From Lepidodermella squamata (taxonomy: Eukaryota > Animalia > Gastrotricha), in assembly GCA_047495785.1 (NCBI GenBank), contig JBLDXI010000017.1, positions 1,116,001-1,180,000 of the forward strand: a DNA stretch of 64,000 bases, read 5' to 3'. The notes under the pieces are model-generated. The model did not search any database. It was not told the origin of the DNA and saw nothing but the letters and a program-made list of their open reading frames with translations. Positions 8,374-29,600 of this stretch are shown here, one piece after another. Numbering within the stretch: the first letter of the stretch is position 1; the number at the start of each line of letters is the position of its first letter. A program made the position numbers and the translations under genes.

Positions 8374-8836
8374 ATTCGGCCTTCAATACCAATTTTTAAT
8401 TTGTCGTTTGAAATGAATTTAATTCGCATTATAAGACAAAAATTTATCCGTATGGCTAAAGATTGGGCATAATTTACATTTTAATTTCTGATAAGGTCGA
8501 CTGTCACTCGAAGTGGCGGGGACAAAACAGAGGCGACCTTGGCTTGTTGCCCTGGTTCACCGAATGAACCGAGCTGCTTAGAATACTGTTAACAGCTTCG
8601 GAAACCATCCCCCACTAAATGCTGTGGTTTCTAAAGTGTTTGTTTAGAGCTGAGGGTATTTTAATTCGTTTTAAAATGATTTCATGCGTAGTAATTGAGC
8701 TTCACGATCAGCTGATGCCGAGATACAGCATGTTATACAACATATCTTGTGCTTTATTAGATTGCCGTGGATCGATATTTGTCTTTAACTTTCGTCGTGG
8801 TCTTGATTCATGCAGTTTTGAATACTTCAATCGATT

Positions 8837-18689: not shown

Positions 18690-20612
18690 ATTGCGAACTG
18701 AATGAACTGATTGATAGAAATGAATGAACTGATGATACCTGTATGTCTCCGCTCGATCATTCTGATAAATATATATACATAGAATAATAATTGTTATTTC
18801 GAATGTACAATGTTTATACACATCTACAGAACTTCCCGGCTCTTTTTCGCCAAAAGCAGTTCAGAAACTCGAACGAAGATTCAAGACCCTTTTAGCTGTT
18901 TCGTCGAAGAAATTTCTTTATTTTGGACCCGTTTCGTTTACACATATGAAAACCAGCTGCGTAAACTACTGACAGATGTCGATGAAAAGTTGCTACCATA
19001 GTAATAAAGTATAATATTTTGACTGCTCTTTGAATGATTCCAAATTTCGTTGACGTCGAGTGAAAACAAACTACATTTGTGCATGTATAAAAGGTAAAAA
19101 AAATCAAACTTGCATCTTAACGCGTCTTCTCTATCACCATCTCTCTCCCTTCGTAAATTTGGCGTGCATAAATTCGTTTCCACGTTTGAAGAATGAGAAT
19201 ATAACATTTTGGTGTACATCAAAGCTGATTCATTTTGTGAGGGAAAAAATGAAAAAGTGTGGGATATCGCCAAATATTTACCCTGATTGTAACCTCTTAA
19301 AATTATATTTTTTTGCGTTTGCTACCAATTTCAATGAAATATGTGTAAAATGAGGGATTACTATTGTAAAAAATTGTACAGCGGCTATTTACTATACTTT
19401 CAACGACACGCTGTAGTTGAAATTTTGATAGCAATCTATTTCGAAATAGCCTGCTAATAATCTTCGTGTCTTCATTGTTGTTGTGTTGGGAAAATTGCTG
19501 CTCGCTATCGCGCGGGTGCTCTATCTTGAAGTCGCTCTCTCGCGTCATTGCCTGGAAAGAAAAATTTATATTCTCTACTAAAAACCCATGAAAATTAGCT
19601 GTTAATTGCAGCAGTCGAACGGCTAATATTTACTACCCTTCTAGTGAAATCTTGATACTTCGTCTCGAGTAAAATGAAGAATGTAATGCACGAAATTGAA
19701 TGAAAATCATAACGAGAAGATTGAATGAAAGTGCCGGTCGGTATTATAATGTCATTATATCGGTAAAGAAGTAAAAAATGCCACGGAATGTTGAAAACTG
19801 TGTTGTTCTTTTCTATAATTTTGCCCCACGGTTCGAGGCCTAGTGAATTGAAATGCAGGGCTCTGTATCAGGTGATGAGAAAAATTGTCATAACTGCCAA
19901 TGGAATCAACAGCCATAAATAGTTGATGTTGGAAATTGACATTTTGAGCCGAAAACTTCCAAGTTGAAATTTTTTTAACTTATTATTTTAATTTTTTTAA
20001 GGGATGAACTTCAAAAGGCTCTGGAGAGATTTCAATGCGGCTTTCAATAGCTACTTCTTTTTACCCCTTGAGCTACTTCTTTTCAGCTGTTGATTGTATG
20101 CAACACTTACGAACATTGTTATGGCTGGAACTTGGAACACGTTGAAAATCAGAAACACATTATGCATAGCGCCTAGTTTATTAGAACATGATGACTTCGC
20201 TATTTAGATGATGGCAAACAGATTCAGGCAGAGAATTTGATCTCCTAAACAAAACAGAAGTTTCAAACAGCGAGCAAAAAAATAAATTTTGATGAGCAAG
20301 CAAGCAATACTAGTGAGAATGATGAACTGTGAGATTTCAGAGAATAAATGAGTTTGATTAAATGGCATATTCTGATTAAAGAGTGGCATTTCAACTATTG
20401 CACGAGAAATGGAGTGGATTTGGCTATTGCAGGTCAAATTATTGCAAAAAATAAACAGGCAAAATCCAACGCGGTTAACAAGGATTTCAAGGAGTCAAAT
20501 GCAAGGATTTCGCATCACAGAAAACAAGCCATCAAATAATTTAGATAAAGGCTATCAACACAATTGTTCAAATATATATCTGGTCTCTTTGATTGACAAA
20601 AATTCGATGATT

Positions 20613-23600
20613 TCAACGACGGTTCATGTCAATTGCACCCAGGGCAAGACGCGGACCGGCAAGTCCTCCGTTGCGGCGGCGGCGCGGCAGTCGACGTGGC
20701 TTTTCGCCCGTAGCGGTTTCGTACGGATAAATGTAGACCTTGTAATCCTTGGTGGAAATGGCCACAGAACGACCGCCATCGATCAGGCAACAGTCAAGAA
20801 CGCCTGGAAATTACGTTTCAAAATTTCGGTTTTTAAAGTGAAAAATATTTACCCGCATGTTTCACCTCGCTTTGGTAACCACGAAGAACCTCGCCAGAGA
20901 GTCTATAAAATTTTCAGATGATAGAAATTCCAAAATGATTAAAAATCTTACGTGAGGATTGTGATGTTGAATGTTTCGTGGTTATCACAAACAACAAGTT
21001 CTCCTCGGTGATTGATGTCGACGCCGACAGGATACATGATGTAGTCGGTACCCGGGTGAATGATGTTGAGCAATTTGCCATTGTAGTTGTACACCTGAAA
21101 ACAAACAATTGAAACGACATATGACCTATGAATGAACATCGTTAAAGCCGCAGAATTCATAAACAAAATTAGGTACGGCCCTAAAACGAGTCGAATGAGT
21201 GTCTCCCACTGACCCTGCTATTGCTTAGTTTTTGTGTTGTTTTAAAGAGCGCAGCTTTCGCTTTAGCGCCCTGAGACCAGCATCAGGTGATGGTGAGGAT
21301 ACATACCTTAGACACAAATTAAATTCGCAGATGGTTAAATGTTAAACGGACTTCAATTCCGACCACCCTCTGCAGCACAACTAAACTCAACTCTACGAAT
21401 ACATCAAAATTAGAGAACGATAAAAATTCGCTTTTACATAACATTAAGACCGCGCGTTGTCAAGCACTTGTTGTACCAGTAGAAAAATGTATAATTAATG
21501 TCGCTGAATTCGAGTAATTGGACATAAAAACTATTTGCCTCAGTTTGGCAATGACCTGTCTTACAAAATATGAACATATTCAGCCTTATGCGCTTAGCAG
21601 CAACCACTGAATTTACCTTTCCACTCCACCACAACAACCAAAGTTCAATCTGAAGAGTTTACATTAGGAGCCAGTTAAGAGGGAGCAAAGAACGTAGGAT
21701 AGCGAGCATAATTAACTGAAAATCGGCATCTTTTCACCCTTTTCTTGTAGGGTACAAGATGGTATAAATATAGATATTTTTCACGTTTTGTTTAGAGCGC
21801 GTAGTGTTTGACTCGGCGCCCCAAGAACCCAGAAAATAGTCAAAAAGATGGAATGAAACAAGACAACGAGATGGAAGATAACGAATGAAAACAACCAATT
21901 TCGTTTCTTCTTGTGTATTTTCGTTGTAAAGAGCGCAGCTTTCGCTTTAGCGCCCTGAGACCAACATCAGGTGATGGTAAGGATACATACCTTAGACACA
22001 AATCAAATTCGCAGATGGTTAATTAAAATGTGGCAAAACTTTTAACCGCCCGCTGAAATCTGATATCAATCAATCTATCGCATAGCTCTAAAAGGCATGA
22101 TGTTGATTATAGCATTGCAAAGAGCATGCATATACTGCTGCTACTGGAATGACATGCAAGAGCATTGTTAGAAGGAGGTTAAACACTCTTCAGGATCGAG
22201 CATGTCCGAAGTCTCATTCAAACTCCGCCTCCTGCGAGAAAATGAATTGAAATGCATTCCTGATTTTCTTCGGCTAAATGGACGCTTTGACTCTGGTTAG
22301 GTCTTCGACTGATAACCCGTCATTCTCGACGACTAGTGATATTCAGGAAAATTTCGATCAGTACCTTTTGCCTTCATTTAACGCAGCAAACACGAGAACG
22401 AGAGTTGATGCCCTCAAAATGAGGAAAGAAATCGAAACAGCGCTGACGCTCTTCGTGTCAGTCAGCAATATCAGTATTTCTTGATTATTTAGTTTTAAAG
22501 AGCGCAGCTTTCGCTTTAGCGCCCTGAGACCAACATCAGGTGATGGTAAGGATACATACCTCGCTCACTATGTCCCGTTCGCCCAGCCTTCGCGCTGCTG
22601 CTAGCCTGCACCCCTGTCTCAGGTGGTTTGCAGTCTGTTGTAAAATACGATAGCTGTTACTATTAGACAACCCACATAAGTGGCCCGGCCCAGTTAACCT
22701 ACGGGTTGGGGCCTTGTGTATTTTCGAATTTTCCGACAATAAACCTTAGACACAAATCAAATTCGCAGATGGTTAAATTTGAATACGACTATTTTTCGAA
22801 CCGACCGCTAAAAGCTTGTATCATTAAACCTAGCGCATTGCGTCGAGTATATCAGTATGTTCAAACGCGATCGAACGAGGAAGCGCTATCACGCCGGCAC
22901 GCAGAGAGGTTTACTGTAAGGCAAATGGTAGGTTAGCAAAGTAAGCGTGAATTGAACGCCGAACTTTTGTGACTCTATTACAGCTTTATTACATGCCTAA
23001 AGGTTTAGCATGGACAGCTCTGAAAGGCCTCGGTGCATGCCAAACACGCTAACTAATATTCTTCGATTTGTAGCCAGATTCTGCAAAGATTGACCACTCA
23101 ACCAAAATATCAGCGTCATGCTATATCGCTCTCGTCGTTTAGCATCTGAGAGGAGAAAAGGTTCGAAACATTTTGAATTACTTATTGAAAGTGAATTCAC
23201 GTTTAGGATTCAGAATTGTTAATTTAGCGAATTAGTTAATTACAAATAAACTGCGACGCTAGCGCTGACGCTCATAAGTCGAAAAATACTGAAAGTAATC
23301 AAATACACGTCTAACAGGCGCGAACGTTTTGAATTCTGCTTATGTTTTCGGTTTTAAAGAGCGCAGCTTTCGCTTTAGCGCCCTGAGACCAACATCAGGT
23401 GATGGTGAGGATACATACCTTAGACACAAATCAAATTCGCAGATGGTTAAAGTTAACAACGACGGAATTGTCAACCGGCTGCTGAAAGATGATACCATTA
23501 GACGCAGCGCATGATTGCTTTTGAGCAACGCTCGTCTAGCAGGCCATTCAAGTCAGCTGTCCATTGACTACAAGTTTCAATTATGTAATAAGCTGATGAA

Positions 23601-26600
23601 AACTAACGGAATACCCAAGGTGCGATCATTTACATTGTTGATGTAGATTAAGTGATAAGTGAACAGTGAAAGTTACGAATCAGTATCGTACATCACTCCC
23701 CCATCGACATCACTCGAGTGATCTCGGAAAAAGTTGACTAGAGTGATGTCGATGGGGCCAAACTGCTTCGATGTGATAACTGCTGTAGCTGAGTGTCAAA
23801 AGAGCCATTAGATCCACCTCGAATGAAGGCAGAGTCTAGCAGCAGCATGCAAATACCGTTTACCGTTTACCGAAAACGCCTTAATGCAGCAAGGTATTAA
23901 CTAAATAGCCGCCAAAACACAAGTGAGCGATTTGTTATTGATGGCCGAAACGGCCACAATGAGGGGAAAAATCGTAAAAGCGGCAACGCTTGTTAGAGAT
24001 ATATAGGATTCTTCGACTTTTTCAAGAATTAAAGAGCGCAGCTTTCGCTTTAGCGCCCTGAGACCCACTTCAGGCGATGGTGAGGATACATACCTTAGAC
24101 ACAAATTAAATTCGCAGATGGTTAAATTTCAAATTGACATAAAATCCAAGCGCTTTCTAGAGGACCACTCCGATGAATAGTACGAATAACTCGAATTAAA
24201 TGAGAAGCAGGAAATCGGTTTTGGAAGCACCAAGCCTACGCATTATCAATCATGTGTTGCGGCACTACGCTAACATTTCAACCGTTTCGCTAAAATTTCA
24301 GTACAAAGTATACAACCTGATCAATCACACCGAAAACGTTTTGCAATAAATTATTCACTAAAATATTCTTACCTAATTAAAAATGGGCCAGCTTCAAGTT
24401 AAAAGGGGTTTTCAAGTAATTTTCGTCATAACCACGTGGCGTCCGATTGGAAGCTCTGACAACCTGGACTGAAGTTACCTGGATGAGTTACAATCCAGCA
24501 AGGTACTAACGAGTACGTGAAATAAAAACCGTCAAAACTGCGAGATAATGCGCGTTACAACAAACTCAAAATTTCAAGACAAACAAAAGATGGATAGCTA
24601 CTAGAGATTGTGCTTATTTTATATATTTCTTATTTAAAGAGCGCAGCTTTTGCTTTAGCGCCCTGAGACCCACTTCAGGCTATGGCAAGGATACATACCT
24701 TAGACACAAATTTAATTCGCAGATGGTTGAAGTTACATGGTACCCAATTTCCACCCGCCCGCTGTGAGGTGATATTATCAAACCCTAATAACTGTCTTAA
24801 TTTACGCAATTATCATTCGAGTCATTTCATAGGAGACAAGCCAGTAAAGCAGCGGACTAATCTTTGATAGCTGCTGCTGACGATCAGACAATCAGATAGC
24901 TAAGTTGGAGGGAAGTTGCGAAACAAATGCGAGGGGGAAAGAGCGGATGGAAGAATGTCAAGCGCAAAATTAGGCGAATTCCGACTAAAAAATAGTTGAC
25001 CTGCTACGCAATCAAAAAAAATACAAAGCTTGCCATACTGCACGATGATAGAAAAGGCGGTCAGCTCAATCCCAAGCTTTAATCCTCCACTACTAAATCT
25101 AATCAACATGGATGAAGAAACATTTCACCCGTTACCAATTACCAAACAATGTATTGGTCCCAAAGAAGAAGAAGAAGAAGAAATAACTGGAATATATCTA
25201 AACTTCGTTGATTTTCGCAAAGCTAGAAAATGATTTTTTCTTGTTTCCTTATATTTTAGATTTAAAGAGCGCAGCTTTCGCTTTAGCGCCCTGAGACCAA
25301 CATCAGGTGATGGTAAGGATACATACCTTAGACACAAATCAAATTCGCAGATGGTTAAAGATGAAAAGGACCCAATTTTCAACCGCCCGCTGAAATCTGA
25401 TATCAATAAATCTATCGCATGGCCTCAAATTCCACAATACTTTCAATATCAGGCAATATGATAAACTCAGTGCGGCGGAAAATATTTTCCGAATGGATGG
25501 AATGCAAGGGAATAGCACAAAAAGCGTAGAAGGGATATGACATCCTACAAATCAGGATTACTCCTCAAGTTCGACTCTTCTTTCATTCGTGAGGCGGGCA
25601 TCGAAGAAATCATTTAGTTGACAGAATTATCAAAATGTTGGAGATGCCTGCAATATTCAAGATCGCATTTTGCCTCGTGTTTTTCATTGGCGAAATAGAC
25701 GCTATGACACACGCCACACGCTTACCTATCTACTGTTAAAGAAATAAATTTACTACTCCTAATTCGCTTTCTGCTCAAACGCATCAGTCATCACCAAAGC
25801 AATTATCCATCATTCACGATCGAGTTACTTCCATTATCTTTGCCATTAAGGTGGCGACATGAAATCCAGCATAAGGGCGTGGAATAGCGACGCGCATCGC
25901 AAATCGTATTTTGGTTTTTCCTTTTATTTATGGGTTTTAAAGAGCGCAGCTTTCGCTTTAGCGCCCTGAGACCAACATCAGGTGATGGTAAGGATACATA
26001 CCTTAGACACAAATCAAATTCGCAGATGGTTAAATTCTACAATGAAGGAACTCTTCAGCGCTTGCTAAAAGCTCAGATCATTCAACTTAGTCCACAGAAC
26101 AAGAAATATGATATGCCTTAAATGTTGAGAAGAATCAACTTCCCGGGATTTAATTTTAAATACGACAGATATTAAAATAAAATTGATACGAAAGCTCGCT
26201 GCTTGCGAGAGCTTGATGATAAAAATTATCAAAACTGATAGCCATAAATCGGAAAAATCAAGCACTAGGCTAAAATTAGATGAAATTGGAACTTACGAAA
26301 ATTGAGTTTTTAGTGTTGTCGGCAATGAACACCTGCTTGTCACGGCTGACGCACATAGCAAACGGGAAAGTCATGCTCTCCTGGGCGGACTGACTCAGGC
26401 AAGTGAAATGGTGCAGCCGTTTCCCGGAAGGCGAGTAGACCGAAACAGTCATCACCAAACCTTGAAGGACAACAACATTTCCGTCCACGTCGACGCAAAT
26501 GCCGCGCGGGTGCTGGATTTCGTCGACAGCAATGCGTCGAACAAACTGGTAGGACGAATCGAACACCTGAATGAGTTTTAGGGGCGCGCGCTCCGTGATA

Positions 26601-29600
26601 TAAAAATTGCCGGTTATCGGGCAGATGCTCGCGCGGTTCGGGAAGTGCAGTCGGCGGTCGCTATTCGGGTTGGGGCCGAAGGCCATCTTGAAAGCGCCGT
26701 TGCTCGAAAAAATCTGAATGCGATGGCCGTTCGCATCGGCGACGACCAGGTCGTTGTTAGGGCTGGCACATAAACCACTTGGCTCGTTGAATTGACCTAA
26801 GGCGTCGCCGCCCTGGCCGATTTTGAGGTTGAACTGTATGCGGTAGCGGGCGAACACGGGTGGCGGACGGATGTTGACTGACACATTCAGATTGCCAAAC
26901 GGAGCGCCGTTTGAAGACGCGCCGGAATTGTCGAGGTTGAGCGCAGTATTGCAACGGCGAATACCCGTTTCAGCCGGAAATTCTTGGGCATCTAAACAGT
27001 AAAAATCGCGAAATTATCAAAAAATAATCCACCTTAATAAATAGGATAAGTATACGGCAGAAATCAGAATTGTCTACAGCCGCAAGTGAACATGAAACGA
27101 TAGAGAGGAGGATGAAGCATAAATGAACGTAACTTCGGCGAGCCACTGCGGGAGACTGCGCTCGCGTGCGTAAAATGTGCGTAATCCCGCGAGTGGTGAG
27201 GGCGACATTGCGTAACACCTGGTCGGTCTTGCGCGACGTTCCGCGGAAACACACAGAGGACCAGTACTTGAAAGAATTTGCCCGCAATGCCACTCAAAAC
27301 ATTTCCGATGAAAAAATCAAAATGTTCACAAAATGTTTTGAAGTAAATTACGAAATAAAGCAATCTCTTAAGCGTCAATTTTGAAAGCTGGTTGTAGTAA
27401 GTAATATTAATTATTCTTGGGACATTTTTAGGGCCGCTCTAAGCGCGCGATCTGACTGGTCGTTCGCGCTCGTTGAGAAATTTTTGGTGATTTTAAAAAA
27501 TTTCAGAAAATTTCCGAAAATAAATACCTACCTGTTCAAATATTGAACATTTCGAAGCTGAATTAAGTAAGTCATCGGGGTCAACAGCGAAATTGCGAAT
27601 TGCCAGAAATACCAGCAAAAATAAAAAATAATATCCTTTTTCGAAGGGAATTTCCAAAAAATTGATTGCACTCCGAGATCGATGCAAAACAGGTTTTCTT
27701 CATTTTCTTCATTTTTTCTAGTTATAAATTATAATTCGTTATTTACGGAGTATACTCATTTCCTGCAGCTTGACCGAGATATGAGATCGAACAAAATCTA
27801 AAGGCAGGTCGAAGACTGCAGGTAAAATTATAACAACTTGGAAATTCGCAATATAGAAAATATTAACTGAGAGGTACCCGAATACTTTTCAAGATTCCTA
27901 AAATTCAAGTGAAATAATTGAATACGAACGTAATACAAATGCGAATAAAACCGAACGCAAACACCAAAAATGTCGGAAAACAAAGCGGGCTCAGGAATCA
28001 AAAGGCCACAAGTGGGCGGATGGAGGGTCATGATTTTTCTCCATAGCTAATCGTAATTCTCAATTTACCTAGGTTAAAAAGCCCATTTCAGGACTGAGGC
28101 TACGGTTTTTTTTATAAAATATCCCGGGCCGAGGTGATTTTTCATTCGGCTAGATCTTTCTTTCCAAAAATTGAAAAACGTGCTCATTAAAAAAGCGATA
28201 ATTGGTGGGCAATAATACTTATGGCTGAGTAGTATTATTGCAGCTGATTTATGATATCAGCGAATCGAATAATTACGGGAAATAGGAAAATAGGAAAATA
28301 ATTTGCTTCAATTGGTTTAATCCTAACTGGGCCGGCGAAGTCGCACAACTTCCTAAAACCGGGAAAAATTTCTGGTAATAATTTTGAATAACAATATTTT
28401 TAGTTAATAATTATCAGTAATCAAGTATGATATCTAATGTTATCTAGAGGCTAGAGGTAAAATTCGAAGTTAAATGAAACAAAAACCGAAATCCGACGGC
28501 GATCAAGAGCAACGGGCGAAAACTTTAGGGTATTGGCGTGGAAAATGCCCCCACATATTGGAAAATAACGAATTGTTTCGGGTTAAAATCAGCATGATTA
28601 CGAGTTAGGTTCGAGATTTTATAATATATCCGAAACATTAAACGAATTCCAAAGATTTAACAAAATTCAAGATTTAGAGAAAAAATGTTTGCGCATAAAA
28701 TCAAGAAAAACTCAATTGCGAAATCGACAGGGCCAAATATTCCCTCCTTGGTAAGATAAAAGTCCAACTCTATTGAAGCATAGCGGAATATTTCAGGAAA
28801 AGGAGTACACATTTGAATTCTTCCGCCCGCCTAAGATTCGAAAAAGACGCGAATTTTTAAATTAGAATTATGAGATTGGAATATAACATAATGAAATTCT
28901 CACGTTTGTTCTCGACGTTGCCAGCAATCGACGCGTTAGCTGAATGAGGCATTTCTTCAGGAACAGCGCAAATCTCCGCGAATCTCGGCACAGGTGACGT
29001 CGGAACGGAGAAGGTCAAGCGGGTGGCAATTTGACTAGCGCCGACGTTCAGTTGCTGGTTCTCAAACGTGGCGTCCAGCATAGACGGTAACCCCAATTTA
29101 CTCGGCATTTTCTTCTTTGGAGTCGACGAGCAGTTCTAAAAAAATCGAAATTAATTTACAATTCTCGAAAATGCTGATTTCATCAATCATCCGTAGAGCA
29201 GAGGATCGCACTGACAATAAACAACATCAATTCCCCACTTTTATTGCACAACTCAAATGTCGCGTTTTTACGGCGGCGAAATTTCATTCAAAGATCAGTC
29301 AAAACAAAAATCAAATTAATCGACAGACAGCAACAACCAGCAGCATCAAAACATCAAAAGGCAGCAAATCAAACAGCAATCAAACTACTACGAAGAAAAA
29401 GAATCGCTGATGAAACTAACTGGAGCTTCGCTTTGTTCGTCGTCGACCACTTGATCGTCGATGGCAATCGCCGGCGCAGTTTGCGTCGAAGCGGATTCAT
29501 GCGTCGTGCTTTTATCGTCGCTGTTACTCTTCGGAGCCCGATTCTTGGCGTCTAACAGCTTTTCAAAGTTATCGCAATGAAATTGCGCGCTGCTGATGGC

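Follow-up and report, generated by a model that had tools for sequence, protein, structure and literature searches.

The window analysed here (the whole stretch of 64,000 nt, positions 1,116,001 to 1,180,000 of contig JBLDXI010000017.1, referred to as C17, of the gastrotrich Lepidodermella squamata) contains eight SL-like genes, all on the minus strand, the third of which (copy 3) is split by an insert. Their layout, as it appears from the fold of copy 2, comprises a leader of ~30 nt, a short stem that includes the splice donor, an Sm-like stretch and, at the end, a hairpin, and it is on this architecture that their designation as putative SL genes is based. A comparison of window positions 19000-27000 with Rfam (E up to 1) gave no SL or other RNA family for either the array or the insert, and a literature search with the leader sequence returned nothing relevant. 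Some further features of the SL arrays may be recorded here: just left of copy 2 lies a degenerate stretch (21786-21830) that weakly resembles a leaderless SL 3' half, with a 13-nt core under strict scoring, while a cleaner orphan SL 3' half is present in the second C17 array (C17:1749505-1749555), and the spacer between copies 4 and 5 holds an inverted repeat (23698-23767) with arms of ~17 bp, CCCATCGACATCACTC ... GAGTGATGTCGATGGG. The coordinates of the split gene, its insert and the related features are given in Table 1.

Table 1. Features of the split SL-like gene and its insert (positions in the window), and of the SL-like genes of the rDNA spacer (positions in the rDNA unit)
Feature	Position	Strand	Remarks
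3' half of SL copy 3 (donor GT, Sm-like site, terminal hairpin)	22488-22561	-	97% to copy 2 positions 33-106; architecture as in the copy 2 fold
Left ACCT of possible duplication	22558-22561		CT may be the element's; C11 relative has CTCGCTC there
Insert: 5'-truncated 3' UTR of an APE-type LINE whose group has SL-a, in the rDNA spacer, as its target	22562-22742	+	91% to C11:1044290-1044476, 86% to full-length C89, 81% to C1
3' UTR hairpin with UACG loop	22687-22713	+	conserved across 12 distinct copies
Tail motif CAATAAACC	22737-22745	+	conserved; from the aligned 3' ends of 28 copies
Right ACCT of possible duplication	22743-22746		ACC may be the element tail's; tail consensus of relatives is AATAAACC
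Leader half of SL copy 3, ending ...CTAAG/GT	22743-22776	-	100% to positions 3-36 of intact copy 2
14-mer	21910-21923	+	identical to insert 22713-22726; abuts 3' end of SL copy 2; 0.02 expected
SL-a, SL-like gene in rDNA spacer	unit positions 8437-8460 and 1-85	5S strand	unit C90:6581-15100
SL-b, SL-like gene in rDNA spacer	unit positions 451-543	5S strand	unit C90:6581-15100

The two halves of copy 3 have 4 nt in common (AGGT when read on the SL, i.e. minus, strand, ACCT on the plus strand) and enclose 181 bp, so that an earlier note, which had described from the letters alone a copy split by 181 bp with a duplicated AGGT, was right on this point; the AATAAA that it had placed at the junction is also there (22738-22743, on the right junction of the insert). 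Because the CT on the left and the ACC on the right recur in relatives of the insert, the true target duplication may be anything from -1 to +4 bp, 4 bp being the upper bound, and both junctions show microhomology over these same letters (CT left, ACC right). In a region as repetitive as this one, the assembly could have fused a LINE tail into the SL array, but both junctions are clean and the SL halves fit exactly, with the 4-nt overlap. In addition, the insert is 9% different from its nearest relative and is therefore not a mis-placed copy of another locus. Such an artefact is considered very improbable.

Equally, it does not seem that copy 3 is rescued at the RNA level. The insert has GT and AG at its ends on the SL strand, for which reason the earlier note had suggested that it could act as an intron and be spliced out to restore the SL RNA, but these dinucleotides merely derive from the AGGT overlap. 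Inspection of the sequence shows the acceptor context to be purine-rich, without a pyrimidine tract, and the insert, with its 181 bp and 51% GC, is unlike two nearby host introns, which are ~50 nt long, AT-rich and end in TTTTATAG or ATTTCCAG. Removal by splicing is thus highly unlikely. The Sm-like site and the terminal hairpin are cut off by the insert from the leader and its donor, and in all likelihood this has turned copy 3, one of many redundant SL copies, into an inactive pseudogene whose insert is not spliced out.

Judged from its sequence, the insert is a dead fragment from the 3' end of a LINE of the APE-plus-RT type, truncated on its 5' side. Six other places in the genome match the 181 bp, and in three of them the similarity runs upstream into much longer elements; over 170-180 bp the identity to the C89 and C11 relatives is 86-91%, and the insert corresponds to the last 181 nt of a C89-type 3' UTR. 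The part that is left carries the hairpin and the tail that a reverse transcriptase would need, as would be expected of a complete, non-autonomous SINE-like element of 181 bp that is mobilised by the LINE. However, the homology to C11, C89 and C1 continues upstream into a LINE 3' UTR and ORF2, the other short copies are cut off at differing points, and the 5' boundary at 22562 is unique among the copies. As no copy has the same 5' boundary, the insert is better described as a truncated LINE than as a SINE, the latter being scarcely probable.

The strand and the structure of the insert are in line with this assignment. The plus strand folds better than the minus strand (-58.1 kcal/mol, z -2.6, versus -53.8 kcal/mol, z -1.2), as the earlier note had stated, and the C-UACG-G hairpin to which it had drawn attention is real, being backed by covariation among the relatives. 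When the 12 distinct copies are compared, pairing is kept in 99% of cells, neither the loop nor the inner stem varies, and each of the five outer pairs (5/5) shows compensatory changes, with a covariation score that was matched in none of 500 shuffles (0/500). The core of this hairpin, TTAACCTRCGGGTTG with a covarying outer stem, is a feature of the LINE group and is present in the window insert; it is probably the recognition element of the reverse transcriptase. The tail of the family reads CAATAAAC(C), followed by CATTCCA or CATTTCA. The window copy keeps CAATAAACC and is without the final heptamer, and its C11 relative, which ends at AAACCA, is also without CATTCCA. The TTAGAC that follows the tail in both the window and C11 copies was considered as a part of the element or as a nick-site motif, and was rejected as either because it lies within the 12-bp target duplication of C11. 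As for the 14-mer that the earlier note had found to be common to the insert and the flank of copy 2, the match is exact, and no homology extends from it on either side.

The coding content of the group is best seen in the C89 copy, which is full length, with a 777-aa ORF1, a 1022-aa ORF2 and a 3' UTR of ~540 nt. Its ORF1 has three CCHC knuckles, and its ORF2 has an N-terminal Exo_endo_phos domain (Pfam, 6e-15) and RVT_1 (1e-29), with no match to a restriction-like endonuclease in this ORF. Compared with the PDB, ORF2 gave weak matches to R2 and L1 ORF2p (~1e-10), and a word-index protein search gave only two weak relatives. The C11 copy (C11:1042335-1044491), to which the insert is most closely related, is likewise 5'-truncated and also internally deleted, its deletion joining ORF2 residue 379 to ~785. 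This copy does not lie in an SL gene, and its target duplication, which is of the TTTCAT... kind, measures 12 bp. It sits within what appears to be another retroelement of opposite orientation.

Where intact members of this group insert is evident from the C89 copy, the flank of which belongs to a repeat of 8460 bp, present hundreds of times with 100% identity, which is the rDNA unit. This unit carries 18S, 5.8S and 28S on one strand and 5S on the other, and its spacer contains two SL-like genes, SL-a and SL-b, which both open with ATATCTGCG, as do the SL genes of the window, and both have a leader of 30-31 nt ending in AG/GT and a terminal hairpin at the end. A profile built with SL-a and SL-b included would be circular; an HMM of the window SL copies alone matched them only weakly (E 0.2-0.9 in 0.68 Mb), but they were its only non-self matches, and both their register and their strand were the expected ones. 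Around the donor, the window SL resembles SL-a on both sides (TCT.AG/GT..GTATC...ACCA).

The canonical LINE copies are found at unit position 8460/1 (SL-a) or 467-476 (SL-b), with tail junctions 8-10 nt before the donor (9 nt for one group in SL-a, 8 nt for another in SL-b). Without exception they have the sense orientation of the SL-like gene, their target duplications are 4 to ~39 bp long and often span the donor, and TTTC follows the 3' junction, as it also does where the C11 and C1 elements inserted. The copies at these rDNA sites represent at least four LINE subfamilies, 57-66% identical in ORF2. In one of them, 66% identical in ORF2, the 3' UTR contains a tandem array with a 65-bp period (C122, C80, C51, C126 and others), and these copies are intact and mostly located on small rDNA-rich contigs. 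The earlier note had taken the insert for the remnant of an SL-targeting retroelement, and this was correct as far as the 5'-truncated non-LTR tail and a family specialised on SL RNA genes are concerned, though not for the kind of endonuclease, which is Exo_endo_phos and not restriction-like. Its expectation of longer copies at the same SL nucleotide, with an RT and a restriction-like endonuclease, was likewise off: the relatives lie in SL-a and SL-b, in sense, 8-10 nt before the donor, and are of the APE type.

Two other observations on sequences near these sites can be mentioned. Outside the rDNA, at C33:1785569-1785668, a LINE stump of ~90 bp has as its next letters TATTCGTGAG/GTGTTG, similar to the canonical SL-a site TTTTCTGAG/GTTAGT; this flank may either be a near-cognate target or stem from SL-a itself, picked up when the source copy was read through. 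The rDNA spacer (C90:6581-15100, local 296-330) further has a short stretch the complement of which reads GAGATTCCCACTGTCC, presumably the 28S segment beside the classical R1/R2 insertion sites, a fragment of which may have survived here as a relic.

The window copy shares with the rDNA-spacer group its 3' UTR, the covarying hairpin and the CAATAAACC tail, but departs from the family rules in other respects. It lies outside the rDNA, in a dispersed SL array on C17, where it runs antisense to copy 3 and is placed right at the donor. It is without CATTCCA and has a duplication of at most 4 bp; furthermore, the TTTC that is found at the canonical sites and after the C11 and C1 copies is missing from its junction. 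Nor does the rest of the genome point to a habit of this kind. Only one split gene was found among at least 41 dispersed SL genes (the other 15 arrays being judged from search coordinates alone), and of 12 off-rDNA 3' ends of the LINE group, found by the hairpin motif, only that of the window is in SL-like sequence, none of the 11 others lying within an SL gene. As the window, too, holds no DNA of the LINE group besides the insert, the dispersed SL genes do not seem to be a recurrent target of homing. Yet these genes make up only ~4.3 kb of 121 Mb, so that with uniform insertion the chance of one of 12 copies landing there is ~4e-4, which makes a purely accidental landing by a family that homes to SL genes suspicious, and a loose link between the SL-homing and the window hit is conceivable.

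One such link would be a sub-lineage, made up of the window and C11 copies, whose tail ends in AAACC and which has, as its own target, the donor in dispersed SL genes, entered in antisense. The two copies are indeed each other's closest relatives, both are without CATTCCA, and the donor's GGT has its complement in AAACC. However, the C11 copy is outside any SL gene and has its TTTCAT... duplication, a second SL gene with such an insert was not found among the at least 41 dispersed ones, and a full-length member was not found either, which makes a dedicated sub-lineage improbable.

Alternatively, homing may have been relaxed, the endonuclease or DNA-binding part recognising a dispersed SL gene through donor features like those of SL-a. 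Priming would then have started from the sense-strand cut near the donor, which is normally the second cut, and would thus have given an antisense copy at the donor. The canonical duplications place this sense-strand cut from 2 nt before to at least 11 nt after the donor, the donor region being the part that the family cuts at its canonical targets, and the likeness of SL-a and the window SL on both donor sides and the improbability of a chance coincidence (~4e-4) also speak for it. Against it are the single hit among at least 41 dispersed SL genes, with none in sense orientation, the small duplication (at most 4 bp versus 4 to ~39 bp at canonical sites) and the missing TTTC. Altogether, relaxed homing with wrong-strand priming is regarded as rather unlikely, but as a rival to be taken seriously.

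The explanation that is preferred, with a probability of roughly 0.6, is that of a stray, non-canonical integration of a LINE tail, by which one redundant SL copy was inactivated. While intact members of the LINE home to the SL-like genes of the rDNA spacer, the window copy would not have arrived by this normal route. The orientation of the insert implies that a sense-strand 3' end of the dispersed SL gene would have served as the primer, at about AAGG^T, right by the splice donor. This end may have base-paired with CC or ACC in the tail. Reverse transcription would have begun inside the tail, at ...AAACC, and halted after 181 nt, upon which the cDNA may have been rejoined through microhomologies of 2-3 nt, leaving an antisense stump with the leader and donor on one side and the Sm-like site and 3' hairpin on the other. 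Endonuclease-independent or microhomology-mediated LINE insertion has been described for L1 in repair-deficient cells. The window copy is like such L1 insertions in being severely 5'-truncated, in lacking its 3' terminus and the usual nick motif, and in having junctions with microhomology and little or no target duplication, and by analogy its traits resemble an endonuclease-independent or an aberrant target-primed insertion.

That a stray copy should have ended up in an SL gene may be a matter of accessibility, since SL chromatin that is open and heavily transcribed could passively bias insertion, which would fit the stray integration (in one Leishmania study, SL arrays were reportedly nucleosome-free). 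A different reading, namely that the SL-homing LINE group is drawn to SL genes generally by a cue other than sequence, is rather unlikely; the cue could be tethering of the RNP to the machinery of SL transcription or processing, or a nuclear location that the rDNA and the SL arrays share.

Compared with known systems, the group has features of two kinds of site-specific LINEs. The canonical members resemble NeSL-1 (Caenorhabditis SL1) and CRE, SLACS and CZAR (trypanosomatid SL) in that they lie in sense in the SL exon, where the SL promoter can drive them. In addition, those elements insert in sense at a fixed SL-exon nucleotide, as do the rDNA copies here, but not the window copy. They differ in the endonuclease, which in NeSL, CRE, SLACS and CZAR is restriction-like (PD-(D/E)xK) and C-terminal to the RT, whereas in the present family it is N-terminal and apurinic-like. 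The other kind are the APE-type site-specific LINEs of the R1 and Tx1 clades: R1 targets the 28S rDNA, Keno the U2 snRNA genes and Mutsu the 5S genes. The group shares with the R1 and Tx1 clades its APE and RT in ORF2, a gag-like ORF1 with CCHC, multicopy RNA genes as targets and the absence of a poly(A) tail, the CCHC knuckles of ORF1 being found in R1-like and I-group elements as well. This likeness is one of domain content and habit, and the target differs, being an SL gene in the present case. In the literature searched, APE-type site-specific LINEs are those of the R1 and Tx1 clades, and the LINEs that target SL exons (CRE, NeSL) carry a restriction-like endonuclease (PMC4640811). A paper on an SL-targeting LINE of the APE type was not found in this literature.

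For the annotation of this genome it follows that SL copy 3 is to be entered as a pseudogene, and that the insert is to be masked as a LINE fragment and not as a new element or intron. More generally, the genome of L. squamata has a group of APE LINEs with an SL-gene habit, while the SL-targeting retrotransposons in the literature searched are all of the restriction-like-endonuclease type. To this the window adds a member of the group in a dispersed, non-rDNA SL gene, reversed and with a non-canonical junction, a case which bounds the strictness of homing. If an attraction independent of sequence were to exist, dispersed SL genes would be open to hits in either orientation at the exposed donor, and the window copy would be the first trace of this. 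In any case, it provides a natural example for asking whether the specificity of such elements comes from the DNA sequence, from pairing between RNA and target, or from the nuclear context.
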